Shown piece after piece: positions 14,580-33,520 of a stretch of DNA of 64,000 nt. Position 1 is the stretch's first letter; each line of letters begins with the position of its first letter. The position numbers were made by a program, and so were the translations under genes. The notes beneath the pieces were generated by a model that ran no database searches, was not told the origin of the DNA, and saw only the letters and a list, made by a program, of their open reading frames with translations. This stretch comes from Monocercomonoides exilis PA203 (taxonomy: Eukaryota > Protista > Preaxostyla), in assembly GCA_001643675.2 (NCBI GenBank), contig LSRY02000059.1, forward strand, positions 372,001 through 436,000, read 5' to 3'.

Positions 14580-17500
14580 TCATTGAACAATCTCGCAAAG
14601 CCACCAAAGACGTTCTATCTCACAGAAAAGCCATTCAGCACACTTCAGCCGCTCAAGTTGCTTCGGGTTTCTTTTCTTTCCTTTTCTGCTGTTGCAGGAG
14701 ATGTTTGTTTTTTCATCTGTTTCCTCACTTGATGTCTCTCCTTTGGCAGAAAAACAGCAAGAAAATGGTCCTATCGATTTCTTTTTCTTCTTCATAATAT
14801 CTTTTTGTTTGCCAGTGTTTTGTGAACCTTTGTCGTAGGAAGGATATTTTCTCGCGGCTACTGTTTTATTGTTTGACTGTTTTTTCTTCTGTTGTGAATT
14901 TGCAATCTTTGAAGAGCTTTCAGAAGGATAAGAAGATGAATATGAGGAAAGTTCTTCGGAATCGAATGCAGATGCAGAGATATCTCCAAAATAAAGAGTG
15001 CCAGCGCTATCACCTCCAGTTGCAGAAGAAAACAAAGAAGAAGAAGAAGAAGAAGAAGTGACTGAAATTGAATTTGATGAGCTTAAACCGCTTGACTCTT
15101 CATCATCTGATGTATATTCAATCTGTTTTCTCTGATAATTCCTTCTCAGTTCACTCGGTCTGTGCACAGCTGACTTATCACTTCCTCTTCGCTGTTGTGA
15201 TGTGTCATCTGCTTTCCATTGTTTGCTTTGAACTCCGTGAGCATTCATTTTCTTTGTGGCATCTTCATCAGAAGCTGATCTTTCTTCTGAATGTGATAGA
15301 GACGATGATGTCAGAGATGAATGTCTCCTGCGATGTTTGCCTGCTGTATCATGTGCAGAAGTCAAAGGGGATTCGGTTGTTGCATCAAGATGAGATGACA
15401 AACTGAGTGGAGAAGAAGGAAGCTGCCGCTTGGAAGGAAAGCAGATTGACGATGACACTTTTTTCTGGGATTGATTTGATGGGCTAGCTGTATGACCTGC
15501 CAGGTTTGTTTGACTATCATTTTGCGGATTGATGGAGGTAATTGTTGGCGAATTCGATGAAGGACATGGTGAAAGCTGAAGTTTAGTTGCAGAAGAGGAT
15601 GAAGGTGGACGAGAAAAACTTTCATCTTCGCTTGGCAATTCATTAAACGAAGGTTTCAATTCTTCAATCATCTCTTGGAGTGGTTGAGGTGCTCGATCAG
15701 AATCAAGATTCTGATGAGGGATTTGAGTGTTCAGTTTTTCCTTCTCTGTCGAAGTTGTTTCACTTCGATTGCCCATATCCACATTTGCAGACAAAGTTGG
15801 TGTCTTATGGACAAACTCACTGAGATCAGCAGGCAATTGAGGTGGTTGCAACTTTGTTTTATTTGATCCTGTACCAATCTCATCAAGCAGCTCATCCATT
15901 GGTAACAAAGTGTGTTTTGCTTTCCCCCATCCTTCGCCTCTTTCTTCGTTCCCGCAATCACATGCACCTTCTCCTTCTTTTCCTGAATGATTTTTATCAT
16001 GACCCGTTTCGTGTGACGCTGTAGTTGAACTCAAACTTGGCGAGAGGAGTTGCTGAGCATCCTGTTCAGATAAGCGTGTTAGCGGAGTTGCGCCTGCTCC
16101 TTGCTGAGGAGTAAGAGAAGCAACTGGAGGTGAAAGCGAAGCCATATGAGAATCATGCGTAGAGCAGGACACATAGCTACGAGGAGTTTTTCGCTCAGAG
16201 CCCAGATCACGCGATAGAAATGCAGATGTTCCAGATGCGCTGTGATGCCTTTCATGATGGCTTCCTGCGTAACTGCGATGACGACGATGATGATTGTGGT
16301 GGTGCTTGTGATGAATGCGGTGAGGGTGATGATGGCGATGTTCATGAAGTTGGCTTATGCTTCTGTCATTGCTGCTGTTGTTGCTTTTTCTTTCAAACAT
16401 CTCTTTTTGTGTGACAACTTTTGCAAGTGCTTCTTTGCTTGATTTTCCGCACCGTGCAGTTGCGCGTCCTTCGTCTGCCGAGTGTTCATCACTCGAAAAG
16501 TCATTCATGATGGCCGCTACGTTCACTCTTTCTGCGTTGCCTTCATTTCCCTTCGAATTGGGATTCCTTGCAAGCATCAGTGTTGATCCTGCTCTTTCAA
16601 GAGGTTTTTTCACTTTTGCCTCAGTAGCCACATCAAAGTACATTCCATCTGAATCATCCGTGTGTTGTGTGTTTGTACGCACCAGTGAGCGCCCCACAAA
16701 GTTTTGCATGAGCTCAGACTGGCGAGACATCGATCGCATATTCCTCTGGCTGGCAATGCTCATTCTTGAGAATGCTCGCATTCGGCTCTGACGCATTGCA
16801 CTGTTCCTCATTACGCTCTTTCTTCCCATGACGCTTTCTCGTCCAACACCAAACAGCGAAACGCGATCATCTGCCACTCCTCCTTGAAAACTTGTTGCGC
16901 CATTTGATTCACTGTCGTTATCATCAATCTCTTCGACCCACTCGTCATTCTGCTCCATGGGCATATCCAACGCTCCCTCAACAATACTGCAGGCAGACAT
17001 TGGCCTCTGCCATTGCTGTTGGCTCATCTTTCCGAACTGTTCTGCTTCTGCTGCTCCACTCATTTCACCCAATGCATCGCGAAAGCGAGGACTTGTGCCG
17101 CTTGGAAGAAGAGTGCTTCTTGGATCCATTCCAGCCCCTTCTGTGAGATCACCCTGATTTGGTGACTGCAGAACAACAAGAGGCAATGCAACGCATGCAG
17201 TCTGTGGAAGAGGTGCAAGAAGCCCATTCATTGAGCGCGAGATAGTATCCGTTATGGGATCATGCTGTGCAGGCAGCTCCAGCAATTGCTGTCCCATTTG
17301 TTGTTCGTTCCTCCACATATCCTGTCCATTTTGCATTGATGGAGTAATGTGCTGGGCTGATTGTGGGCGGAGGAGGGACAGTTGCAATTTGGAGTGTGAA
17401 GAGAACTTCGACGCAGATGAAAACGAACGCTGGACATTTTGTGATATTGGTGAATTTTGAAGTTGAGGAAGGACTCGTGAACTGAGGTTGTGCGATAACA

Positions 17501-20500
17501 TTTGATTTCTGGATAATGAGCGAGGAATTGGAGGTGGAAAGATACTGTCTTCATCAAATAATGGAACCAAACGAGCAGGTGTTGCTGGAACATTTGCTGT
17601 GCCTCCGAATGTTGCTCTTCGAGTTCCAGAGCATTTTTGAGAAGATGCATCGGCTTCAAGATAAGGAAGAGTGAGCGATCTGTTTTCACTCCCTGATTTC
17701 CTTGACCGTCCATCGCTCTGATAGCTCAGCTGATCTGAGGCTGTGTGCGGTGTCTCGTGTGACTGGAAGAGCAAAGATGTTGAAGAAGTACTGCGCTTCT
17801 GCCTGTTGTCTATCACAAGAGGAGCTGGATTGCCTGCTACTTTGCTGCTTTTGCTCTGCGGAAAGACGGCAACATCAGCATTGTTCCAACTTGTTCGTAT
17901 TTGTCCGAAAGAAGTGTCCGTTAACCTCCTTTTCTCGTTCTGCCATTGAGACGGTCTCCTCATAGAAGGGTTCATTGGAGGCGACGCAGCCACAGAAAAC
18001 GGATCAAAGTCAGCTGCATTCTGCCCATCACTGTATGTTTCTGTATGAATGTCTGAAAAGGAAGGCTCGCGATGCCTCCACCTCCGAAAATCGCTTGGCG
18101 TTTCACATGCGATGCCAAGAAATGGAGTTGGAGGATTCAGCGAAGAGGGAGCCAAATTGCCAGATGAGCCACGATGAGGCGAAAGAGCGCTAATGGAAGT
18201 GACAGAGGAAGGAGACTGCTGAAGTGCAGGAGAAAGAGTGAGTTGACCAGTGGAAGATGAAGAGGAGGAAGAGGAAGGAGAAGAGGGAAGCATCAAAAAG
18301 GAAGCGGAAGGCCGTTCCCTGACTGCAAGCACAGGTGTTCTGGACTGATTGGACAAAGAAAGAAGATCTGTTGATGGATCTGTTGGCGTTGCCGGCAGTG
18401 AGTGTATCTGGCGCCTGAGAGCGTCTGAAGACTCGAAATTACCTTTTCCCTGTGCATATTCCGCATTGATATCACTGAAACTGCGTGGCTTTCCACTCCT
18501 TCGCATTCGCCTCTGGTGGAGCTGACTTCGTTTGAATCGCCTGGCTTCTTTCTTTGCTTCAATAAGCATTTGCTGTTGCGGCAACAGGTCACGAGATGGA
18601 AGTTGTTCAGAAGAGACAGGGTATAAAGAAGAGTGAATGGAATTCCAGTCAAAAGGCAATGCTGATGACTGATGTGAGCGTGATGGAATGGACGATTGAA
18701 GTTCGAGTGATGTTAGCGGTGTCACGTAAGATGGCTTGTATGGAAACAGCAGAATTGCTTCCTCCGCTTCATTCTTCGTCATCTTTGCCTCAGAAGCAGT
18801 GTCAATAGGTTCAACTGCTAATTTTGTTTTCTCTTCCTTTGGCATCTTCCATGTTGGCACCAGTCTGACAGCCTTCGACAGCTTCATTACCGCAAACCAT
18901 GGTGAAGATGTCGGAGCCTTTGTGTCTGTGCCGAGTGTCCTCAGTCTGTACTCTCTCTGCCTGTGGATGAGAAGGCGACGTCTGGCATAGCATCCCCAGT
19001 CAGCAGTGTCTGGGTATCCGCTTGCCACCATCAGCACCCTCTGAAGAGACTGGAGAAGCACAGGGATGCGGAGAGAGCGTGATGAGTTGAGAAGAGCGCG
19101 CACTTGCACATTGCAGATACGTGTGCACAGCAGAAGAAAATACCTTATGTCCAGTGCAATTTGCACGGCTCCAAAGAAGTTCACAGAAGTAAATTGAGGA
19201 AAAGATGTTGAAGAGGAAGAGGAAGAGGAAGATGATGAAGATGATTTTGTTGCTGAAGTTGAAGTTTGCTTTGAGAATTTTGCTTTTGCATCCTTTGAAA
19301 ATGGATGGGGAGACACAGAAACAAGATAGGAAATAGCTGAGTTCCATTTGTTAAGAGCAACTGCAGAAGACAAAACAGAATTTGCTTCTTTCTGTTCAGT
19401 GAGAGGAGTCATCATTGTGACAAAGTGAGATTCATGAAGCTCATCTTCACAAAATGATGACTCGCAACCAGAGCTGCCTTCATCTGAATTGGAATTTTTT
19501 CCCTTTTCATCTAAATTTGTACATGAAGAAAGTGGTGATTTGCAATACTCAATTTTGTTGTGCTGAACACAAGGCAAGTTGGGTGGCTGTTCGCATAGCC
19601 AGGGGCCATATGGAGTGAAACGAAAAGACAACAAATGGTGGGGAACAACTTTTTCTCGGCTTTTGCATCCTGAACTGTTGTTGCAAGTTCCATTCTTTGA
19701 TTTATTGCCTTTGTCTTTATTTCGTTTCTCTTTTTGACTTCTATTTTTCTTTGATGTTTGAGTTGTCAAAGCACCAATTTCTTGTTCTGCATTGTCTTCT
19801 TCATAATCTTCATCACCGCTGCCTCTCCATTCATTTTCCTGAAGTGATCCCCATCCAGCTAAAATGCGGAGGTATGTAGTGATAATCATTCCAATTACGC
19901 TTTCACACAAAAACAGTGACCAAAACGGTGGAGACGACACAGAAACAGCAGTAGCAGCTGTGGTGAGGAGGTCAGGTTGGGCTGTAGCGGATGGCGAGGC
20001 TGTAGGAGATTGCTGGCTGAGCTGAGAAATGGATGTGGAAGGTGCAGCATTGCTGGCAGAAGAGGCAGAAACAGCGTTGAACACAGAAAGAGAGGAAAAT
20101 GGAGGTGCTTTTGGAGTGAGTAGAGGAATGATAAGAGAGTTGCCCAATTCAAATGCAGCAGCAGACGGACGAAATGGCATCGAAGTCAGAACGAAAGGCG
20201 AAGGTGGCAGAGAGTCAGCAGCAAGGTTTGACGACTGTTGATTCTGTGACAAGTTTGATTTGGCAGAGTCAACCGGCTTGGAAGGTGTAGCAACAGAACT
20301 TGGAGATAGTTTTGAATGTTGTTGCTGTTGTTGCTGCTGAAGTTGAGGTCTATTCGGAGTGTTGAGAGGAGAAGCAGAAACAGAAGCAGACAAGGAAGAA
20401 TGATTGGAAGACAAAGGCGACTGTTTCTGGTGTTGCTGCTGATATGACATCAGATGATGCGAGTGTGATTGTGACTGAGTCTGTGATTGTGGCTGAAGGG

Positions 20501-23500
20501 TGGATGGATGTGGTGACTGTTGAGAAGAGACGAATTGGCGAGGAGAAAGAACAGAAGATGCATACGATGTGTCAGAACGAGTGGAAAGCGGTGTAGATGT
20601 TGATGAAGAGGAAGAGGAGGAAGAGGAAGAAGAAGAAGGAGAGGCTGAAATAGAGTTGTGTCTTGGATGAGAAGCCGTTCGTTGAGCAGAGGAAGAAGAA
20701 GTTGGAGTATTCTGCTGAGAAGCTATTCCATTTTTCATTTGAAGCAAAGCAGAAGCAGAAGAAGAAGAAGAAGCGTTCTTCTCATTCTTTTTTGAAATTG
20801 CTTTTTGTTCACCTTCGACTTTCATTTTTGCATAGCAAGTGGAATATGCCTGGAGCGTGTCCCAGAAAAAGTGTTCGGTGTTGAAGAGATGTGCAACAAG
20901 TGCCACATGAAGAATGATCTTTTCTATTTCCTTTATTTGCTGCTGGAGCATCGGCGCCTGTGTGATGGCAGGTGTTGCAGAAAGAGATCCCAGCGAGTCA
21001 CACACCCACATCGCATCACGCAGAAACGAGAAGAGATAGAAAAGAGAAGAGGCAGAGGAAGAAGGAGAGGGAGATGGGGAGAGAGCGGAGGAGGGATTTC
21101 CAGTCTTTTTGGCAGGAACTGGAGGGAAAAGCCAGGATTTGATGGTTGTTGGGACGATAGTTGAAAGAGTCTGCTTCATCAGAGTTAAGAATGGATGAAG
21201 TATTTGAATGGCCGACGGAGAAATAGACAGCGGAGAAGCGAGTGGAATGGAGTGCAAAGGAGAAGAAGCAACATGAACAGGAAGGTTTGGCAGAAGAGTC
21301 GGAAACACCTCGCAAAGAAAGCTCAGTGGAAGATGACTGATAAACTCATCGAATGCATGAACATGTTTTTTGTAGCGTTTTATTGACTGTTTGACGTGAC
21401 GTATTGCCTCATCCTTGTTATTTCCTTCGTTTTGCTTGCTTTTCTGTTCATTTCCCTGTTGATTAGCAGACGAAGCATCGCTTCCTTCTCCTTTGAGCAT
21501 CTTTCTGATCCATTCAACATGGCTCTTCCCATATGCCAAAATAGACAGCATATCCTTCATTGTCTGATGATGCCCCTTCGACTTCTCAATAATGTCACAT
21601 GCTCTTCCCCACTCTTCCTCGTCTGTGAAAAGATAGTCTGCCGGTTTCAGTTCCATCAAAATATCAGCTTTTTCAGGGACAACAAACGAGAGCAGCACAG
21701 CAGCCAAGCCTGAGCCATAAGAAGCATTCGACAAAGGAAAGGGATGAGTGAGGATGTCACGCTCAGAGCGAGTCAAATGGCGGCGAGGAGAAAACTGCAC
21801 GTCTGTTTTGGATGAACCGGATGCTCGCAGCTCTGCTCGAGAAGAGGCAGCAGAAGCAGAAACAGCTGAGTTGAGAGAAGGTGACCGGGTTGATGCGCAT
21901 TGTGTTTCCTTCGTGTTGATCTGCTTGTCTTCTGAAGGAGATAAGATTGGATGTGCTGACACTTTGGATTTGTTGTTATTTTCAAATTGTGGCTGTGACT
22001 GTTTAGATGCTAGGGATGTGTACTTGATGATATCTTCTTCTGCATCCTCAGTCAATTCATCTGAAGAAGAAGAAGAAGAAACAAGAAACGAAAAAGAAGA
22101 CGACGAAGAGTGACAAGATGAGTCAGAAGAGAAATCATCTTCCTTAAACAACTCTTTCATAGCTCTTCTTCTCTTCCTCCTTCTCTGCTCCCTCTTCTCC
22201 CTTTTCTCCTGTCTGATGTGCTCCATTTCTTTGTTCTGCTGCTTTTTCAGTGTCATCCACTGCTTCATTCCTCTCATAAGCGGCGGGTGGATCATCGAGT
22301 GCGGTGGGTCAATGCAGAGCAATCCATCGCAGAACGAGAGAAAAAGGCGATATGACTCCAAACTTCCATTCAAGCACAAAGGGCGCAGCACACGCAGAAG
22401 GAAAAAGCGACTGATGACTGAAAAGAAGAAGGAAGGCAAGGCTTGTAAAGAAGAGCGAATGTCATTTGACATCTTCTTTGCTGAATTGTCTGTCATTTCC
22501 GAGTGCTCACCTGAGACACGAGGACTGTTGGCAGCCTCAAATCTTGGCGTGGATGGTGCAGATGTGAGTGTTTTGTCTGTCTTTGATGCGAAATGGGATG
22601 AGCGTGGCTGATCAGGTGTGACAGAGCGGAGGTGCTTGGATGGCAGAAGCTTTGGAGAGAAGTGAAGAGGTCCGTCCAACCTCTTTTTCAGAAGTGGCGA
22701 TGGCTGCTCGCTCAAAGAAGTGATTCTTGGAGAATTTGAGCCGATAGCAAAGGAATTGTTCAAAGCAGGATGTGACTGCATTGCATTATATGGCTGTTTA
22801 GTGAGTGTTGGTGTTGAGCCACCCGGTTTTAGTGTATTTCGTGCTGAGATTATCGTTGACTGTGCCTGCAGGTGGACTTGCTGAAGAGACGAAAAGAACT
22901 TCTTCTCGAATCGAATTCCGTTGATGAAAGGAAAGCAGAATGCAGTTTGCTTCAGCGAGGCACGACGCGCTTTTCTCTGGTTCAATTTAGCCTTTGCAAG
23001 AGACATGGAAGATGAAGAAGAAGATGATGATGCGCCTTCAGTTGCTTTGCTTGCTGCAAACAAATTAGTTGCAGACGAGGCAGACAAATGAGAAGGTGAG
23101 GAAGCGTTGTGTGCAAGTGGCACAAGAGCCGTCATGAACGATGCAGACGACTGCCGCTGCTGCGCCATCTGAATCATCGACGGGGTGAGAGGAAGCAAAC
23201 GCTGAGCAGACTTCACAGAAGCACGCGGATAGATGTTGATAGACAGAGCAGAAGGGTGGCGATCTGCTTTATCGCTGGCCTTTGGAGTGCTTTTGATGTC
23301 TTTTGTTGTCTGATTGGCTGAACTGTTGGCAGTCTCAGAGTTGGTTTCGTTTGATTTTTCATTCAATTTACTGGAAATGGTGAGATTTGCAGATGAGTGT
23401 GTTCCTTTGTTCTCTTTATCATTCTCCTTGGCATTTGCAGATTGAGCTGAATCTTCTTCTTTGAAGATTTTGAGTTTTGGAATATTCACTTTTGGCTTTT

Positions 23501-26500
23501 TGATTTGAGTTTTCGATTTTGGTTCTGCAAAATCTTCGATTTTCTCCTCTTTTGACACTCTTATTTTTTGTGAATTCTGTTCTTCAGAATTCGATTTTTC
23601 CTCCTTTTCGCATCCATTTTCATGTTCTCCATCATCAAATGATTCTGCTTCATCTTTCCTTGTTTCTTTAATTTGTTCATTCTCTGTCTTTTGCTCTTCA
23701 TCCTTTGCTTTCTTTATTTCACCCTTCCCATTTAGCTCTCCCTGTTCTTTGCTACTCTCATCTCCATCATTCTGTTCTTTTGCCTTTTCAATCGTCTCTC
23801 TCGAAGTCTTACCAGCTTTCAATCGCTCAGTCATCGTCATCTCGTCCTTCTCATCCACTTCAGTCAGAATCATCTCCTCCTCTTTACCGCTTTCTCCTCC
23901 ATCTGCTGCAGCAAACCCCTTTGGCAGTCGTACACTCAGAGGCGATCGTCGCCCTAATCTGGGTGACACTGACTGCGACACAGCTGCTACAAACAGCTCA
24001 GTTGACGAGGAAGGACTCAGTTTAGACTCACAAAATAAATTGTGTGTCTCAAGCAGATTGGGATTGTTGGTGCTGTTGTCACACGACTGAGGTGGCGGAG
24101 AATGATCGAGAAGAGAAGGAGAATCCGTTGGAAACTTCTCAGAATTTGCATTTGACTTGCCCTTAGGCGATGCTGACTGAGTTGGCGATGATGCATTTTG
24201 TTGCTGTTCCTCTTTCAATGGAGGTGGTAATAAAGCATTTCCAGATACCTGTGAATTCTGAGAGGCAATAAACATCATCGCCTCCTGAGATAGCGGCGGT
24301 ATTTCTGAGAAGGGCACCTGGCTGAACATCTTGTTGCTGGCAGGAGATGGGGGCATCTGTTGTGGTGAGTGCGATGAAAAGCCGTCTCCTTTGACTTCTG
24401 CAAAGAGAGGGGAGTCAGTGTGGTCAATGACACATGTGTCTGTGGATGAGAAGGAGCTGGCTTCTGAGCTTTCGTCGCTGGAGTGGACAGACGCGCCAGA
24501 CACAGAAGACGAGGTAAGGTTGTGCGGATGAAGTGTTGGCAGCTGTCTGTATCCAACGTTTGGGCGAGAATTGGACTGAGAAAGTTGCGAACTTTGGTAC
24601 GGCGATTGCTGTGCTGTGTGCATAGGAAGTGGAATAAACTGGAATTTTGGTGAGTTTTGAGAGGAAGATTGCTGAGGAGTTGGGGCAAAGCGGACGTGGT
24701 GTTGTGCTGACTGCTGTCCAGCTGCTGCAACAGCAGAGCCATTCGACTGTTGAGAGGCTGTGTCTGCATTCTGGTTGTTCATCACAAACAGCGACTGATC
24801 AGATGCCTGCGAGTGTTGCTGTGGAATTGACTGTTGTGACTGAGGAGGTGGTGGTGGCAGTTGCGGTGACAGATTTTGCGAGGCGAAAGAAGGGAAAAAT
24901 GACAGACGGGGCTGTTGTGGAGTGGAAGGCGGGATCAGATGAAGCGATGCATTCAGAAATGAAGAGCCGATCATCGCATTCCTGTTGCCGAAGAAGTTGC
25001 GAGGTGATGACAAAGCAGCAGAATTTGGAGGCTGATGAGAAGAAGAAGGTGAAGTGGAGGCAGCGAAAAAGAGACGAGAAGGAGAAGCAAGCTGCTGTGG
25101 AGATGAATATGATGGTGTGGTTGGTGCAGATGGTGGAGATGACTGCCAAGCATTGAAAAGTTGATTGTTTATGTTTTGATTGTGTGATAGCATTGCCTGT
25201 GAAGGTGTTTGGGGCTGCTGCATGAGCTGTGTCTGAGAGATATTCTGTGGCTGCAGAGTGATTTGAGATGAGTGTCGTGTCTCATCAGTCAGAACACGCT
25301 GCCAATCTGTGTGTGTCAGCATGGCATTGTGCACAGCAGAAGACACGTTGAATGCAGACGGTGTTATCACATACATCAGCCGGAATCTGGGTGTTTCTCG
25401 AATGCTGTGGAATGAATGGGTCTGTGGTTTTTGATTGCTTGCAGTGTTTGATGTTTGTTGAGTAGATTTTTGTTCTTTTCTCTCATTGTGAATGTGCGAG
25501 GAAGAAGAAGGAGATGGCCGATCAGAATCCGCAATGTGTGACTCATCTTTAGTTTTGTTGCTGTTGTTGAATGGATTCTTCATTGACTGGGGAATCGGAG
25601 GGGCAAGAGACAAGTCTATTTCCCTCTCTCCGTTGTCATTCAAATGAATGATAGATTCTGTTTCTTCTTCTGAAGCAGTTTTGTTGGAATCGTCATTTCC
25701 TGCTGTGATTGCGTTTGCATGTGCAATGCTGTCAACGATGTGATCTTTGTTCTTATCCGTTTTTGTTCCAATTGTTTTACTGTTTTCTTCTTCATCGTCT
25801 TCTTTTGGATGGATTTGAGGAGTGGAAAACGATATCGTCTTTTCTTTTTTGCGTGGTAGAAGAGAAGCAGAACTTAAATCTTCAGTAGCATTTTCATTGC
25901 GTTTCTGTTGCTGAGGAGTTGCTGATACATCCAACGGAACAGGTAGTTGTATTGATGATGATTCTGATGACTGATTTTGTTGTGTCTTCAGTGCTTGCTT
26001 TTCGCTGGAGCATTCTCCAACTTTTGAATCACTCATTGTTAATGAATTACGAAGGTTAGCAGCATTTTCATTCTCTTGCTCGCTATAATCACTGCACAGT
26101 TCAAACTTTGCATGCATTTTCAGATTTCTATTTGATTCGTTTCTCAGTCTCTTTTTTGCATTCTTCATCTCTTTTGCGTCCAGCCGATCTGCTTTCTTTT
26201 CTGCCAGCAGTGCAAAAAAAGGCTCCCAACCTTCGACATCGCAATAAGTTGCGTGCTGTGCGGTTGCAGTCACCGCAGCATCGACAAACATCTGCAGCCA
26301 GTCTGAGAGCATCGGAGCTTGTTTCTCGAATGCTTCTTCTTGTTTGTGTGTGGCAGAAGAATGGTTAGTTTTGGGCTTTCTTGGGAATGCTCCTTCTTGG
26401 TGCAACGAAAGTGGCTGAAGTGAAAATCGATTTGGAAGCAGCAAAGAAGGAGCATCGCTGTTTAGGCGAAGATGAAGTGGAGGCGTCTGAAATGACAGAA

Positions 26501-28231
26501 AATGAGACATGAGGGTATTTGGCAAAGAAGAGGATGAACTGCTCGATGAAGTGGAAAATGAAGATGATCTGTGTTTCTGAGAAGCTTGAATGGAAGAATA
26601 AAACCTCCGCACAGAGAGAAGAGGGGAAGGAGGAGCCGATCCAAGTTTATTACCAGGGCGAGGTGTGGCTGCAGGAGAGGCAGTGGGTGTGGTGTGGCGG
26701 GAGTTTGGCGGAGAGAGAAGACGCGGAGAGTGTGAGATGGATGTGTGGGGTGAGTGTGAAGTGGAAGTGGAAGAGGAAGAGGAAGAGGAAGAGGAAGAGG
26801 AAGAGGAAGAAGAGAATGAAACAGAACGGGAATGAAATGATGTGGAAGATGAATGAGTCTGCTGCTTGGATAGGTTCTTGAAGAGCGGAGAAGCATGTGA
26901 CTGAGTGAATGGAACAGGCCCAGCTGAAGAAGAAGAAGAATTTGATGTTTGTTGCTGTTGGAATGAAACAGAGAAATTTGAGAGATATTCTGTTGAGGAA
27001 CTTGAATCGAGCATAGGGCACAATGTTTTGATGGATGAAGGGAACCGATGATCTGAACTTGATGAAGCAGATGAAGATGCAGCAGGCAAACAGGATGGTG
27101 GGTTCACCTGAGAATCAAGATACTTTGAAAAATCAGATGTGGCAATCAAAGATTTTCCACAAAGACATTCCAATGCTCGTTTTGAGAGATGAGAAAGATT
27201 TACTGGAAGAGACTGTGCAGTTGAAAAGTCGGAAGAATTGGTAGGTTCATTTTTAATATTCACAGATGTTGATTTATCATAAACAGAAGAATATAGACTT
27301 TCTGGTAAATTTTGTCTTTCTTCATAAGACATCATTGGCTTATCATTGAGCAACAGTGAAACAAGAGAATCACTTCCGTCCAATGCAAGAATCATTCGAC
27401 TTCTTTTTTGAATCGCACCCTCGTCTTCATCAGCATCCAATGTGTTCGTTTGAATCTTGACAGATTTTTTGCAATAACTTTTCTTTGAAGTAATTTTGGT
27501 CCTTGTATTGTTGACTGCCATTTGGCATCCATGCATTAAAAGGCAAACACTATTGACAATGTTTTGTCTGCAATCCGCAAGTAGACCAATCCCATATTCA
27601 TCTTCTCCATTTACAATTGGATGGTGCAAAATATTGCCCGTCTCCTGGCAGATAATGGCCGTTTGAAAGATTTTGTCGCCTCTTCCGCTAAATGGAAATC
27701 TATGAGATAAAAGGAAAGGGCGACCAATTTGGGGATTAAATTGTTCGATTGAAACAAGAAATCCTTCAAATTTCGCAAAATTCAAATTTTATTATTAACA
27801 TTCTTATAAAATATAAAAATTCAAACTTTCAGAAAAAATAATGTCATTTGGATAGCGTCTTAATTGAGGTAAATCAAAAATTGCCTCTCCAATTCTGATT
27901 GTTTGAAGTCATTTCATAATTAAATGAAAAACTAATTTTTTTAACAGCAAACGTTTGAAATAATTCCCATATTGTTTCCTGCTCTGTAAAAGGAACACCA
28001 TGTAGCTTTCTGAAAAATGCTGATGTAAAAATTATATGTAAGTTTAAATATTTCATTTAAAAGGAAAGACCTTGAAAACTTTCGAGCTTAGCCGGATCTC
28101 TTATAATTTTCTGTATCCTTAATAAATATGAGATTGTCACTTTAATAATATTAGTCAAAAAAAATTAAAAATTTAAATAAATTCAAATTCAAAAAAAATA
28201 AACCATTTATAAGTCGTGAATTTGTTATCAT
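14580..28231 (-). CDS. Giant (>4400 aa) Ser/Gln/His-rich hypothetical protein; one ~13.2-kb exon (27763-14580) plus short 5' exons
   Basis: Uninterrupted 4401-codon ORF ending in TGA at 14580. In-frame small exons at 27894-27827 and 28009-27953 with GT..AG introns. Candidate ATG at 28231, but I could not phase the most 5' exons. No confident domain call. Confidence 0.75.
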
Positions 28232-28540
28232 TGAAATATTAATATTTATTTTGTGCCGATTTTTCGGCTTTATTTCTGCGTTAACCAGTATGTGACGCAG
28301 AAAACAGTTTTTTATGTCAAATAATATAAATTAGGGACAAAGTTTGATCAGATTTCAAATATTGGATGTAATTTTTAGCTTTCTGAATTTTGTTCCACGC
28401 AACATTTTCTTGAATATATTTCAATTTTGAAAATATTCTATGTTTTTTGAATGATGATGAAAGATTGATTTTTATTGGATAGCAGAGAATGCAAAAAATA
28501 AACCGTATTTTTTTTCATTAATTCAAGAATTTTGATACAA

Positions 28541-28562: not shown

Positions 28563-29242
28563 TATTTTCTTGAGAAAAGTAAATCAAATGCTTCCACGAA
28601 AGAAGAACCCAGGATTACATGAAAAAAGGTGTTTGTCTCTTATGTAATCTGTTTTTTGAAATAGAAAAAAAACAAAATAATTACCAGACAATTCTTTTCA
28701 AAAAATAAATTTTAAATCGATATCACTTTGTTATATTTTAATTATTTTCATTCAATCACCTTGTTTTGATGTAAATTGGTTAAATGCTTTGAAAAGAAAT
28801 TCTTGTTTTATTTTGTTTAAAGACATGCAAGATAAAAATTGAGTTTAAATATGTTTTCAAAGAAAAAGAAGAAACTGCAACATTTTCGCAAGCAAAAAAA
28901 ATTGATATAAAAACTCATTCGAGATTCCTGCATGCTTTTGTTTTATGTTTACTATTTTTCATATTCTTTAACTCTGAAGTTTTTAGAAATACAAGAAAGT
29001 TGATGTTATTTGAACAGTTGCAGATTTGGAATCAGGGTGTTGGTTATGCACTGATGGTAATTACCTGTTCGTCCAAGCAACCAACTTTTGCATATTGTCG
29101 GAAATGAATGTTCGCTGTTCTTCTATTCTTGTCAGAAAGTTTATCATAATGTATCAATATTGTAGTTCTAATGACATTACACACATTATCTATTCCATTG
29201 TTATAGTTCATCCGTCCCTATTCATGAGAGTATTTCCAGAAT

Positions 29243-31285
29243 TTATCTCTTCCGATGTTTATTTTTCTCCTTCACAAATCTATTTTTATTCATTGCCATA
29301 TCACTCAAATAATCGAGATTAAGATCATGTTTCATCCATTCTGGAGGATCTGTTTTCATTTGTTTAATCCAGAGCAAGGCCATTGTCAATCCCATTTTGT
29401 TTGCCAGAGTATTTTTATGTCTCATCCATTCTGGTGGCTCTGTCTTCACTTTATTAATCCATATCATGGCCATAGTTTCTCCATCGACATCAGCCAGAGT
29501 ATTTTCATGTCTCATCCACTCTGGGGGCTCTGTCTTCACATGATTAATCCAAAACATTGCCATTGTTTGTCCAAATTTATCACCAATTGTGAGATTGTGT
29601 CTCATCCATTCAGCTGGTTCGGTTTTGACCTCCGAGATCCACCATAAGGCCATCGTCCATCTGCTTTTATCTGCAAATGAATGGTCATGTCTCATCCACT
29701 CTGGTGGCTCTGTCTTCACATTTACAATCCATATCATAGCCATTGTTAATCCCTCAATATTGCCCAGAGTATTTTCATGCCTCATCCATTCAGGTGGTTC
29801 AGTGCCGATATTATATATCCAGAGCATAGCTAAAGTTGCTCCATTTTTATTGCCAAGCGCGGAATCATGTCTCATCCATTCTGGTGGTTCTGTCTTTACT
29901 TTTTTAATCCAGAGCATAGCCATTGTCCAGCATTCATCATTAGAAAGAGTAGTGTCATGCCTCATCCACTCTGGTGGTTCTGTTTGAATTAATTGGATCC
30001 AATACATAGCCATTGTATTTCCATCTTTATCACCAATTGTGGGATCATGCCTCATCCACTTTGGCGGTTCGGTTTTGATATTTGCAATCCAGCGGATGGC
30101 CATAGTCCATCCGTTCTTATCTGCAAATGCACAGTCATGTCTCATCCATTCTGGTGGTTCTAAATTGATATTTGCAATCCACTTCATGGACATTGTCAAA
30201 CCATTCTTGTCTTTAAGTGTTATGTTATGTCTCATCCACTCCGGTGGTTCTGTTTGAGCAAATTGAATCCAATACATTGCCATTGTAATTCCATTATTGT
30301 TCCAAAGTGCAATGTCGTGTCTCATCCACCTTGGAGGCTCTGTTTGAACAAATTGGATCCAATACATAGACATAGTATTTCCATCATTATCTCTAATTGT
30401 GGGATCGTGTCTCATCCATTCTGGTGGTTCTGTCTTGACATCACAAATCCAATGCATGGCCATCGTCCAGCCATAATTGTTGGTAAGTGTGATGTTGTGC
30501 CTCATCCACTCTGGTGGTTCGGTCTTCATAATTTTAATCCATATCATGGCCATTGTTTCTCCATCTATATCAGTTAGTGAATTCTCATGCCTCATCCACT
30601 CCGGTGGCTCTGTCTTCACATGATTAATCCACAATTTTGCCATTGTTTCTCCATCCTCTTCGATAAGGGTAATGTCGTGTCGCATCCATTCTGGTGGTTC
30701 TGTTTTAACACACAGAATCCAATACATAGCCATTGTCCACTTATATCTATTGCTAAGTGTAATGTCGTGTCTCATCCACTCTGGTGGCTCTGTCTTCACA
30801 TTTACAATCCATATCATAGCCATTGTTAATCCATCACTGTTGCCAAGAATAATGTCATGTCTCATCCACTCTGGTGGTTCGGTCTTCATATTTTTAATCC
30901 ACTTCATGGCCATTGTCCATCCCTCTTTACTGGTCAGGGTATTTTCATGTCTCATCCATTCTGGTGGTTCTGTTTGAATAAAGTGAATCCAGAGCATGGC
31001 CATTGTTATGCATCTTTTATCACAAACAGATTTGCTATGTCGCATCCACTCTGGTGGCTCTGTCTTTATATGCTTAATCCAATGCATAGCTAATGTTGCT
31101 CCGTTATTATCAGCAAGTATTGCACTGTGCCTCATCCGTTCGGGCGGCTCGCTTTTTCTCTTTATAATCCAAATCATGGCTTTTGTTTTTCCATCCTTAT
31201 TCATTATTGATGGATCCTGTTTTCCTTTTTGTCTTTCGATTTTACTTTCTGTTTTACAGCTCGTTGTATCCATTTCCCTGCTCAT
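29243..31285 (-). CDS. Intronless 680-aa tandem-repeat protein (21 x 30-aa ankyrin-like EPPEWMRH repeats)
   Basis: Consensus D/N-x-x-G-x-TMAM-x-WI-x-x-V/I-KTEPPEWMRH-x-x-x-L. The DxxGxT start resembles the ankyrin hairpin and helix 1. Confidence 0.85.
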   Translation of the reverse strand: MSREMDTTSCKTESKIERQKGKQDPSIMNKDGKTKAMIWIIKRKSEPPERMRHSAILADNNGATLAMHWIKHIKTEPPEWMRHSKSVCDKRCITMAMLWIHFIQTEPPEWMRHENTLTSKEGWTMAMKWIKNMKTEPPEWMRHDIILGNSDGLTMAMIWIVNVKTEPPEWMRHDITLSNRYKWTMAMYWILCVKTEPPEWMRHDITLIEEDGETMAKLWINHVKTEPPEWMRHENSLTDIDGETMAMIWIKIMKTEPPEWMRHNITLTNNYGWTMAMHWICDVKTEPPEWMRHDPTIRDNDGNTMSMYWIQFVQTEPPRWMRHDIALWNNNGITMAMYWIQFAQTEPPEWMRHNITLKDKNGLTMSMKWIANINLEPPEWMRHDCAFADKNGWTMAIRWIANIKTEPPKWMRHDPTIGDKDGNTMAMYWIQLIQTEPPEWMRHDTTLSNDECWTMAMLWIKKVKTEPPEWMRHDSALGNKNGATLAMLWIYNIGTEPPEWMRHENTLGNIEGLTMAMIWIVNVKTEPPEWMRHDHSFADKSRWTMALWWISEVKTEPAEWMRHNLTIGDKFGQTMAMFWINHVKTEPPEWMRHENTLADVDGETMAMIWINKVKTEPPEWMRHKNTLANKMGLTMALLWIKQMKTDPPEWMKHDLNLDYLSDMAMNKNRFVKEKNKHRKR
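29328..31210. repeat. 90-bp coding tandem repeat array, 21 units, no indels seen
   Basis: ctcatcca(t/c)tctggtgg(t/c)tc recurs every 90 nt (e.g. 29421, 29511, 29691, 29871, 30411, 30771, 30951). Confidence 0.95.
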
Positions 31286-31432
31286 TCTTCTGTATCTATT
31301 GAGAAATATATTATTTATTTGTTCAATTTTCTATATCTAAATTATATTTTTGATCAAACTTGAGAAAATTAGGGACGAACTTTTTTGCTTTCGGATTTAA
31401 GTTCCAGTCACAATTTTCTCATGTTTTTTTTA

Positions 31433-33426
31433 GCCCTGGGTGACGTGGTGACTTCTGACGTAACTTATTCGATTTTTGACGGACGTGACAGATTTTCCCA
31501 CGTCAAAAGGAAAAAAAAAAAAAAAAAAAAAAATTCCATTATTCAATTTTGACTGACGTGAAAGCGGTAATCGGATTTTTCATGCGTCATTGACTTCACT
31601 GACGTCAGTGAAGTCACTTCTCATCAATAATTCGAAAAAGCAAAAAATGAAGGAGAAGTGCAAAATGTGCAAGCCATATTTCTAAATTTCTAACATTTCA
31701 TTTTTCAAAGAATAGCAACCATAACATTTCATTTTTATTTTTAATTTTCTCTAATTTTTATGAAAAAAGCTATATCAAAATCTTCAAAGGATTTGAAGAA
31801 AGCTCATTGAAAGTGTAGTACGTTTGAATTAGTTTGGAGAAGTTTGTTCGAAAGTTTTTTAAAGAATTATTAATTGTTTTGTTTTCTCATTTTGCTTATT
31901 GCTATATGTGAAATGACTGTCATAATTGGAAAAAAGCAAATCACAATTACCACAAAAATCATTATTTTTTGTTATATGAATCATTCTTGGTTTTCAGCAA
32001 CACTATAAAAAAAATCTTTTTGAAAAATGTCTAATCACAAGAATCACTTTTGAATAAAGGAAAGGAAATTAGGATTTTTGATGATGAACAAAGCAGATCC
32101 AATTTCTTTATTTGAATGAATAGAAATAACAGTTTGGAAAAGAATAAGACCTGTTGAGATATTAAATAAGAGATGCTTGAATATGATAAAAATCTTTTCA
32201 ATGAAGATTGAAGAAACAATTCATTTGAAAAAGATGTCTGAATGATTCAAGAATTAAATGAGAAAGTCATTTCAGCAAATTATTCATTTTCACTTTGTTT
32301 TGCTATTTCAGTTTCATTTCGTTTTAATGATATCATTAAAAACAAATACAATTAAAAAGTGCAAAATGAATGCTTTCAATTTTGTAAAATGATTAAAAAT
32401 TGTTAGAGTTTCAAAATGAAAAATTATTCCATTTCTGAACAGGCTCAAAAATTATGAAAAAATATAAAACGATCAATCGTCATCTTCTATTTTTTTTTCT
32501 GAAAATAATTAAGAATTTTATTGAGAATAAAAAATTGCACCTTCATATTCTTCTTTCATCTTTTCAGGCAATTCTTTTCTTCATTGCCTCTTTCTTCGCG
32601 TCTTCCATTTGATCTTTCTCTTCTCTTCTCGGTCTTTCTCTCTCATCCAATTCACACTTTTCGCAAGCTCTTCAAGCTCTTCTGCAACCTCTTTCGCAAA
32701 ATACATCTCGATCACAAAAATTTCTTCAAAATTTTCATCGCTGAATGATCGATTTATCAAAAACTCCAAAGACGATTGTTTTTCTATACAGGTCAGGTTG
32801 TGATGTTTGCAATAATGTTTGATTTTCTCTTCGAAATCATTCGGATTCAGAATTATTTCAAGTTCCTAATTTAAAAATAAGAAAAAGATCAATAATATCA
32901 AAAAAGAAACATCAACGCTCAAAGGTGAAATGCATTCACGTTGCTCAATGCCAATAAAGCTATTTCCACCTCTTTTTGTGTTTCTTTGCTCTTCCACATT
33001 GCAAATTTCAAGCTATTAAAAAAACTCAAAATAAAAACAAAGTTTTAATCGCAACAATCAAAAATTCAATTACAACAACAATTGCACACTTTCATTTTTT
33101 TCGGTAATGCTTTTTTAAATTATTTTATGAGACACATTGGGTCCACAAAGCAAACTGTTTTTCATATTACGCGAAAACAAAGCAAAATCTTGCAAAGAAG
33201 AAATCGATGATTAAAAATATGATAAACAGCTCAGAAAAATATAAGAACTCATTTCATTCTCCTAAGCATCTGTACAAGTATCACAAAACACAATAGCGCA
33301 GTTGGTTTTATTATCTATTTATGCAATAATGGTATTTTTGATTTCAAAAATTACTGCAAAGAAAATGTTTATATTTTAATGTTTCACATTCATTTTGATA
33401 TTATTATATTTTATTGAAACAAAAAG

Positions 33427-33463
<37 letters not shown>

Positions 33464-33520
33464 CGAAGTGGAAAATTGGTGACGGACGTGACGAATTTTT
33501 TTCTTCACGTCACCCAGGGC
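31433..33520. mobile_element. Non-autonomous DNA transposon, 2088 bp, 15-bp perfect TIRs, TA on both flanks
   Basis: GCCCTGGGTGACGTG (31433-31447) pairs with CACGTCACCCAGGGC (33506-33520). TA at 31431-32 and 33521-22. Subterminal TGACG repeats, poly-A 31511-31533 mirrored by poly-T 33430-33463. No transposase ORF. Confidence 0.85.
32560..33000 (-). pseudogene. Fragment of a helical-repeat hypothetical protein family inside the TIR element
   Basis: Interrupted translation KETQKEVEIALLALSNV...CKHHNLT...EFLINRSFSDENFEEIFVIEMYFAKEVAEELEELAKSVNW. It resembles, from memory and not from a search, a large expanded oxymonad protein family. Confidence 0.55.

Follow-up and report, generated by a model that had tools for sequence, protein, structure and literature searches.

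What kind of protein does a gene encode when almost all of it consists of 30-residue repeats that standard domain models do not recognise? Such a gene lies on the minus strand of contig LSRY02000059.1 from the gut protist Monocercomonoides exilis PA203 (assembly GCA_001643675.2), and we analysed it within a window of 64,000 nucleotides (positions 372,001 to 436,000 of the contig; Table 1 gives features in window coordinates). An initial annotation, made from the sequence alone, had described a natural protein resembling the designed ankyrin repeat proteins (DARPins), with a fixed scaffold and hypervariable surface positions, and had proposed either one member of a diversified binder family or a modular, code-like binder. 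The data presented here lead us, at a probability of roughly 0.8, to a different description of its biology. The gene would encode a cytosolic solenoid of 21 highly diverged 30-residue ankyrin-type repeats, which belongs to a lineage-expanded family and serves, by analogy, as a protein-interaction scaffold or adaptor.

The regularity of the repeat is the most immediate property of this gene. M[RK]H anchors recur every 30 residues without exception, from 51 and 81 through to 651, which makes 20 intervals free of insertions or deletions (indels), and Tandem Repeats Finder reports a 90-nt period in the gene DNA, with 19.4 copies at 66% matches. Entropy within the protein is at most 0.85 bit at G9, T11, M12, A13, M14, W16, I17, T22, E23, P24, P25, E26, W27, M28, R29 and H30, and reaches 2.4-3.1 bits at unit positions 2, 5, 7, 8, 10, 15, 18 and 19. 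Overall, about 13 unit positions are practically invariant. The 21 indel-free units on a near-invariant scaffold that the initial annotation had claimed are thus confirmed. Its list of variable positions is also correct by entropy and needs extending by position 5, which precedes the Gly by four residues, and, with a weaker case, by positions 1-3. The conserved D6, G9 and T11 form a D-x-x-G-x-T hairpin-helix junction, after which a helix follows. Each regular unit comprises a hairpin (positions 5-11), helix 1 (12-20), a Pro-Pro pair (24-25) and a single helical turn (26-28). Two pairs of units within the gene are internal duplications, units 5 and 17 at 91% nucleotide identity and units 10 and 14 at 86%.

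At its two ends the protein departs from this pattern. The first unit is a diverged cap, and the short leader before it contains no signal peptide and lacks the Met-Gly start that is present in 13 of 40 sampled paralogues. The C-terminal tail of this copy is shared with none of the same 40. Neither Pfam and NCBIfam scans nor the full-length model revealed an extra or effector domain, or a signalling or secretion domain, in this protein. The earlier description of an intronless gene without signal peptide or effector domain therefore agrees with the domain scans and with the uninterrupted 680-residue frame.

We modelled a seven-unit fragment (residues 114-323) with AlphaFold2, using an alignment of 58 paralogous fragments. 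The resulting model had a predicted local distance difference test score (pLDDT) of 94.7 and a predicted template modelling score (pTM) of 0.85, with a helix of nine residues (12-20) and one helical turn (26-28) in every unit. A model of the full-length protein (pLDDT 87.8) is confident over residues 25-655 and contains 21 helices, with the leader and tail disordered; its beta-bridges link unit positions 5 and 11, which reveals a hairpin with positions 6-10 at the tip. When compared with the PDB by Foldseek, the leading matches were all ankyrin domains or DARPins, at E values of about 1e-5. VIA-align superposed the predicted model on solved domains so that each of its seven units fell on one of seven ankyrin repeats; 198-208 of the 210 residues were matched across a target span of about 231 residues (Z 14-15, root-mean-square deviation 3.0-3.5 Å). 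The 50 best entries of this re-aligned Foldseek ranking consisted almost entirely of ankyrin repeats and DARPins. An exhaustive comparison with 48,161 PDB representatives, independent of Foldseek, returned almost only ankyrin repeats and DARPins among its top 50. Consistent with this, an ESM Atlas model of the exact sequence (pTM 0.65) and language-model features led to ankyrin clusters only.

These models also indicate where the unit departs from the ankyrin standard. Instead of a 33-residue unit with an outer helix of about 9-10 residues, the protein has 30 residues per unit and a 3-residue turn (26-28) after Pro24-Pro25. The models and structure matches therefore support the claim of a shortened ankyrin-type repeat, which keeps the hairpin and helix 1 and, of helix 2, a single turn behind the Pro-Pro pair. 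We propose that the ankyrin hairpin and the 9-residue inner helix would have been retained while the outer helix was swapped for Pro-Pro and a single Trp/Met turn, a replacement that would result in a core of Met, Trp and Ile.

To place this gene within its genome, we searched all 82.3 Mb (101 contigs) in six frames with the protein as query. The 141 matching pieces, at 52-76% identity, merge by position to at least 54 loci, a lower bound obtained with 65 of 195 first-look candidates scored, and they establish membership in a family as had been suggested. Contig C80 carries 22 of the loci in a cluster between 74 kb and 1.05 Mb, and the present copy is a singleton on contig C57, away from this main cluster and with its own leader and tail. 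Pfam Ank_2 recognises 34 stretches in the same genome, none of them at the family loci. Statistics for the family rest on 40 fetched loci, which hold 43 mostly intact frames of 6-38 units each, and on 819 distinct units for the later counts. First units of the paralogues follow a characteristic R-T-E-A-M-R-W-I pattern; their last units are characteristic in that the Met/Trp/Ile residues of helix 1 have turned polar, and the termini are short.

Several further features were seen among the paralogues. A possible Met-Gly-Asn start occurs in 13 of the 40 (L003, L004, L009, L012, L017, L018, L019, L022, L023, L027, L031, L032 and L036) and, judged from the motif, is a possible N-myristoylation signal. 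Eight others (L006, L015, L025, L026, L029, L030, L039 and L040) form a subfamily whose C-termini carry an acidic linker as well as a conserved module, some 30 residues long, of the pattern L-I-K-E-x-L-x-K-H ... S-G-K-K-x-H ... I-E, which corresponds to no known family. Locus L038 (G000:C5:677000-684200) is an open frame of 1,661 residues with several complete arrays head to tail, where the frame runs from a C-cap-like unit straight into an N-cap-like one without meeting a stop; this is explained either by fusion of tandem genes or by a single giant protein with multiple arrays. Pfam matches to YycE-like_C at L014:88-2607 and L008:1816-3618, at 36-38 bits against a 27-bit cut-off, consist of two to three short stretches within the repeats and were set aside as probable additive repeat noise.

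Parts of the region occur in four metatranscriptome runs of one study. We placed RNA-library contigs on the window at 97% likeness or more and found contigs without a differing letter at 29423-29716 (294 nt, in 4 of 4 runs), 29954-30216, 30206-30417, 30412-30616 and 30592-30694, as well as 3' of the stop at 28877-29120; the exact contigs on this copy are 170-294 nt long. Given that paralogous units differ by at least 17%, these exact pieces belong to this copy. Apparent joints in the placement of RNA contigs are chimeras between repeat units rather than introns. The strandless pieces are consistent with transcription of this copy, a point that the initial annotation had marked for checking.

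We then considered the variable positions, on which the DARPin comparison depends. Alignment by hhalign puts unit positions 5, 7, 8, 10, 15, 18 and 19 on ankyrin positions 33, 2, 3, 5, 10, 13 and 14, respectively. With the exception of unit position 15, these correspond to the positions randomised in DARPins (2, 3, 5, 13, 14 and 33), and the DARPin register proposed earlier is upheld to that extent. Among 471 paralogue units from the first 20 loci the same division into scaffold and surface recurs, and variability is confined to positions in the paratope register (above 3.1 bits at 5, 8, 10, 15, 18 and 19, versus below 1 bit in the scaffold). In the models, the variable positions occupy the hairpin (5-10) and those turns of helix 1 that are exposed. 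If ankyrin domains are a guide, the protein would most likely work as a protein-protein interaction scaffold or adaptor, and its ligand surface would be the groove lined by hairpin tips and inner helices, the same region that harbours the variable residues.

Selection on these positions was evaluated from the 819 distinct 90-nt units, which yielded 209-307 disjoint nearest-neighbour pairs with a synonymous divergence (dS) of 0.28-0.36. Counted per position in this crude pairwise manner, the ratio of nonsynonymous to synonymous divergence (dN/dS) was 0.23-0.25 overall and 0.01-0.13 at scaffold positions, and the family is therefore under purifying selection. At positions 5, 8, 10, 15, 18 and 19 it was 0.39-0.79, with bootstrap upper limits that were all at or below 0.93. 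Diversifying selection, that is dN/dS above 1, was not found at the variable positions in this pooled pairwise count. The pattern is that of a constrained framework with weakly constrained, relaxed surface residues and not that of diversifying selection. The proposal of a diversified binder family is not supported by this result; the initial annotation had itself named neutral dN/dS at these positions as evidence against it, and the values obtained are near-neutral.

These values bear directly on the idea of a 'natural DARPin library', in which diversifying selection on the variable paratope positions would have shaped the family into a repertoire for recognising viruses, symbionts or mobile elements. 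Such a repertoire would explain why variability falls in the register of the ankyrin binding surface, why the family is large and clustered, and why nearly every unit presents a different surface, with 721 different six-residue combinations in 819 units. It would also fit the distant relatives on giant-virus-like contigs described below, which could reflect host-virus conflict, and the presence in this gene of one unit-sized tract of ectopic origin. In that tract, the 90-nt unit is 97% identical to paralogue L009 on contig C27 and the flanking units are about 65-80% identical, which identifies it as a short ectopic conversion or unit exchange. Isolated exchanges of this kind are, however, rare, with 2-3 instances across the 40 loci, block duplications accounting for most matches of high identity, and this protein carries no effector, signalling or secretion domain. 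Together with upper limits on dN/dS that stay below 1, albeit in a crude count that could miss selection in a subset of units, this makes a selected repertoire quite unlikely. We favour instead the interaction scaffold, in a family that would grow by duplication of units and blocks and only rarely by short ectopic conversion.

The same unit counts speak to a code-like nucleic-acid binder in the style of TALE, PUF or PPR proteins, which would read one base per unit. A strictly regular period, long arrays and few variable positions per unit are all features that such a protein would display. No small discrete residue alphabet was found among the 819 units, however, which hold 559 four-residue combinations and 132 residue pairs at positions 18-19 in addition to the six-residue combinations given above. 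Strong coupling exists only between positions 18 and 19, and it reflects unit subtypes spread by duplication. Given also that the ankyrin-type fold is overwhelmingly protein-binding, a code of this kind is scarcely conceivable here, and the modular code-like binder of the initial annotation is not supported.

Several results weigh against our assignment of this gene as an expressed ankyrin-type solenoid. Pfam and NCBIfam scans of the protein produced only chance-level matches, and the ankyrin family was absent even at E up to 10 both for this protein and for two long paralogue fragments. A profile search against PDB sequences yielded a single match, to titin, at the chance level of E = 1; these three sets of sequence models thus contain no ordinary known family that matches over the unit. 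When the family profile was aligned by hhalign to a single 31-residue protist ankyrin the probability was 31%, compared with 4.8% for a Sel1 control, which constitutes a weak link. Profile E-values are moreover inflated for any 30- or 60-residue period, as illustrated by the false matches P0083 and P0115 at 1e-17 to 1e-21. Since some profile matches are artefacts of the repeat period, we did not use the E-values to the canonical ankyrins P0101, P0134 and P0137 as proof of homology. With no matching sequence model, a weak profile-profile link and inflated E-values, the case for ankyrin homology is carried mainly by predicted structure. Likewise, the variable residues would share one face according to the ankyrin register, not according to a computed surface. 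For expression, no RNA contig was placed over 31031-31700, a stretch that takes in 255 nt at the 5' end of the coding sequence as well as intergenic DNA and the beginning of a repeat element, or over 29188-29381, which includes the last roughly 140 nt of the coding sequence, and the RNA evidence consists of assembled contigs with no strand information from one study, which does not amount to replication.

As to the two false matches themselves, P0083 (ENA, on a 76-kb contig) is a 3,932-residue frame of 94%-identical 60-residue repeats that looks like translated satellite DNA, and P0115 is a Sel1 protein with a 31-residue period.

A solenoid of independent origin that converged on the ankyrin shape would account for the failure of every ankyrin sequence model to match this protein, for an hhalign probability of only 31%, and for the loss of the second helix, a defining element of ankyrin. 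We consider convergence distinctly improbable for the following reasons. The hhalign register pairs D6, G9 and T11 with their ankyrin counterparts D, G and T, and the R-H-D at the unit end with E-H-E, so that the D-x-x-G-x-T junction lies in ankyrin register, and the units superpose one-to-one on ankyrin domains. In addition, intermediates between the two types exist. An exhaustive profile search of 1.84 billion representatives returned 256 clusters at E <= 1e-3, of which the better matches carry the same unit type at a 28-31-residue period, and 16 of the 97 profile matches scanned also match Pfam Ank_2 at E <= 0.01. The relative P0007 (E 6e-62 to the family profile) reaches 29.8 bits with Ank_2, above the 27.3-bit gathering score, and P0002, P0029 and P0038 have sub-threshold Ank_2 scores. 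Pfam also recognises as ankyrins P0137 and P0134, whose period is 30-31 residues and which belong to the protist 'T-A-L-M ... H-E' type with a terminal His-Glu/Asp. Taken together, the motif register, the graded intermediates and the structure indicate that the unit is likely, though not proven, to be derived from ankyrin.

The gaps in RNA coverage also raise the alternative that this is a decaying or non-functional repeat-derived open reading frame. No RNA contig covers the 5' end, a dispersed element 142 bp upstream of the start codon has possibly displaced the promoter, and the copy is a singleton outside the main cluster with a unique tail. Against this, the frame of 2,040 nt is unbroken, conservation of the scaffold is strong (omega of 0.25 for the family), and exact RNA-library contigs from four runs lie on several unique parts of the gene. 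Decay is consequently very unlikely, and we retain the reading of an intact scaffold gene.

Relatives outside the genome are few at the level of simple sequence comparison, a word-index protein search having identified only two. Of the 97 scanned profile matches, 10-12 end in a C3HC4 RING finger, which suggests that the RING-ended relatives may be E3-ligase substrate adaptors. A RING finger is absent from this protein by Pfam scan and from 43 of 43 sampled paralogue frames. One relative, P0023 (assembly GCA_003324335.1), begins with Met-Gly, and its first unit closely resembles the M. exilis caps; a faint precomputed DUF8270 tag on it was not reproduced on re-check.

The genomic context of these relatives varies. 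P0007 is encoded on a GC-rich contig (L048) together with cellular eukaryote-type genes (NifU, Rpb10-like, EF-hand and Rce1). P0009 is encoded on an AT-rich contig (L049; 29-40% GC) with tightly packed co-directional genes of unknown family, and P0006 (L051) and P0039 (L052) come from contigs of the same kind, the latter with a deoxynucleoside kinase and a T5orf172 gene in addition. L052 corresponds to ENA ERZ909592, a 35-kb groundwater metagenome contig of 32% GC, on which the relative has a C-terminal Cys-rich end and lies among 24 co-directional, tightly packed genes of unknown family. By composition and gene arrangement, these three AT-rich contigs look like giant-virus DNA. No giant-virus hallmark gene was seen on L049, L051 or L052, and two pattern scans of the IMG/VR viral contigs returned no relative.

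Acquisition of the family from a giant virus, or as endogenised viral DNA, would be suggested by these AT-rich contigs with their dense co-directional genes, and by the deoxynucleoside kinase and T5orf172 gene of L052. Several observations point the other way. GC content at third codon positions (GC3) is 0.40 for the gene and 0.41 for the family mean, inside the range of 0.38-0.52 for neighbouring host genes. The locus sits among ordinary host genes with flanks that are unique apart from dispersed repeats, the L048 relative has a cellular eukaryote-like context, and the IMG/VR scans were negative. The direction of transfer is, furthermore, not readable from repeat proteins. On balance a viral origin is unlikely. 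A broader version of the conflict model can also be formulated, in which the family is an intracellular recognition repertoire engaged with giant viruses, host copies would offer hundreds of different ankyrin-type surfaces, renewed by duplication of units and now and then by cassette-like conversion between loci, viral relatives would join the same scaffold to a RING E3 ligase and so target host proteins, and selection would act on a subset of units too small for the pooled dN/dS count to resolve. We regard this as a rather improbable scenario.

Comparison with known repeat systems helps to place the family. It shares with canonical ankyrin repeats (PF00023/PF12796, clan Ank) the order of hairpin then inner helix, the D-x-x-G-x-T junction, the stacked solenoid and the diverged terminal caps. 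It differs in its 30- rather than 33-residue unit, in an outer helix of one turn after Pro-Pro, in the replacement of the Ala/Leu core by Met/Trp/Ile, and in that no ankyrin sequence model detects the protein. The short protist 'T-A-L-M' ankyrins represented by P0137 and P0134, a type to which the Giardia Protein 21.1 family presumably belongs, have the same 30-31-residue period, a G-x-T-x-x-M helix start, His-Glu/Asp at the unit boundary and the same hhalign register, and they too are ankyrin-only proteins in large lineage-specific families. In contrast to the present family, P0137 and P0134 keep a full second helix and match Pfam Ank_2 at 1e-58 to 1e-151.

The metagenomic repeat-plus-RING proteins (P0001, P0003, P0004, P0005, P0008 and others) match the family profile at E values of 1e-62 to 1e-94 and have a 28-31-residue unit with the T-M-A-x-x-W-I and E-P-P-x-W-M motifs. 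They are shorter, at 250-520 residues, and 10-12 have the RING end, whereas the sampled M. exilis copies are without it; some are encoded on giant-virus-like contigs. DARPins, whose general architecture is described in PMC8683736, resemble the family in having a fixed framework, caps at both ends and variability at the hairpin tip and the end of helix 1, and the best structural matches include DARPin chains such as 6moj_A (Z 14.7). Unlike DARPins, the family is natural, has 15-40 units rather than 2-4 and a truncated outer helix, and gives no sign of selected variability.

The surroundings of the gene are those of an ordinary host locus, with neighbours that encode SET/MYND, protein kinase, RRM, UBA/XPC-binding and CCHC proteins. 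The upstream dispersed element, which has sub-terminal inverted repeats at 31472-31533 and 33435-33496 composed largely of A/T runs, is probably a non-autonomous DNA transposon, and its position bears out the initial annotation's statement that the gene sits beside transposons. Apart from this element and a second dispersed repeat downstream, the flanks are unique and not shared with paralogues; the gene adjoins mobile DNA but is not its cargo. Directly downstream on the same strand, at 14580-27785, lies an uninterrupted frame of 4,401 residues with no Pfam match at E <= 1e-5.

Table 1. Features of the gene and its flanks, in window coordinates
Feature	Position	Strand	Description
Complete open reading frame	29243..31285	-	680 residues plus stop codon (29243-29245); uninterrupted, ATG start
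N-terminal leader, residues 1-23	31217..31285	-	Hydrophilic, predicted disordered (pLDDT about 30)
Unit 1, residues 24-53	31127..31216	-	Diverged N-terminal capping unit; K/R-T-x-A-M-x-W-I pattern common to first units of paralogues
Units 2-21, residues 54-653	29327..31126	-	Twenty indel-free 30-residue ankyrin-type units
C-terminal tail, residues 654-680	29246..29326	-	Degenerate half-unit, weak helix 664-668, then Lys/Arg-rich end; pLDDT 34-54
Gene-conversion or unit-exchange tract, about 117 nt	29779..29895	-	Gene nt 1391-1507; comprises unit 16 plus some 25 nt that precede it
Dispersed repeat element, about 2.1 kb	31428..33500	.	Near-full copies on C28 (98%) and C26 (93%); many fragments elsewhere
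Dispersed repeat, about 180 bp	28353..28535	.	Downstream of gene; at least 39 further genomic sites match it at about 70% identity

Four features of this copy are newly described: its unique termini, the exactly matching RNA pieces, the conversion tract and the repeat element upstream. The finding is a variation on a common protein-binding scaffold and opens no new kind of biology, and its interest lies in what it reveals about that scaffold and about its annotation. An ankyrin stack evidently tolerates near-total loss of the outer helix when a Met/Trp core and a Pro-Pro turn take its place, which is relevant to the folding and design of repeat proteins, and the unit provides a natural framework smaller than the 33-residue one of DARPins. 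The unit profile also retrieves about 250 unnamed metagenomic clusters, some of them on giant-virus-like contigs and some RING-fused, which a curated model would annotate. Within M. exilis, the family is invisible to standard domain annotation and yet outnumbers the recognisable ankyrins, with at least 54 loci against 34 Ank_2 stretches. A major part of the interaction scaffolds of this protist is thus listed as 'hypothetical'.

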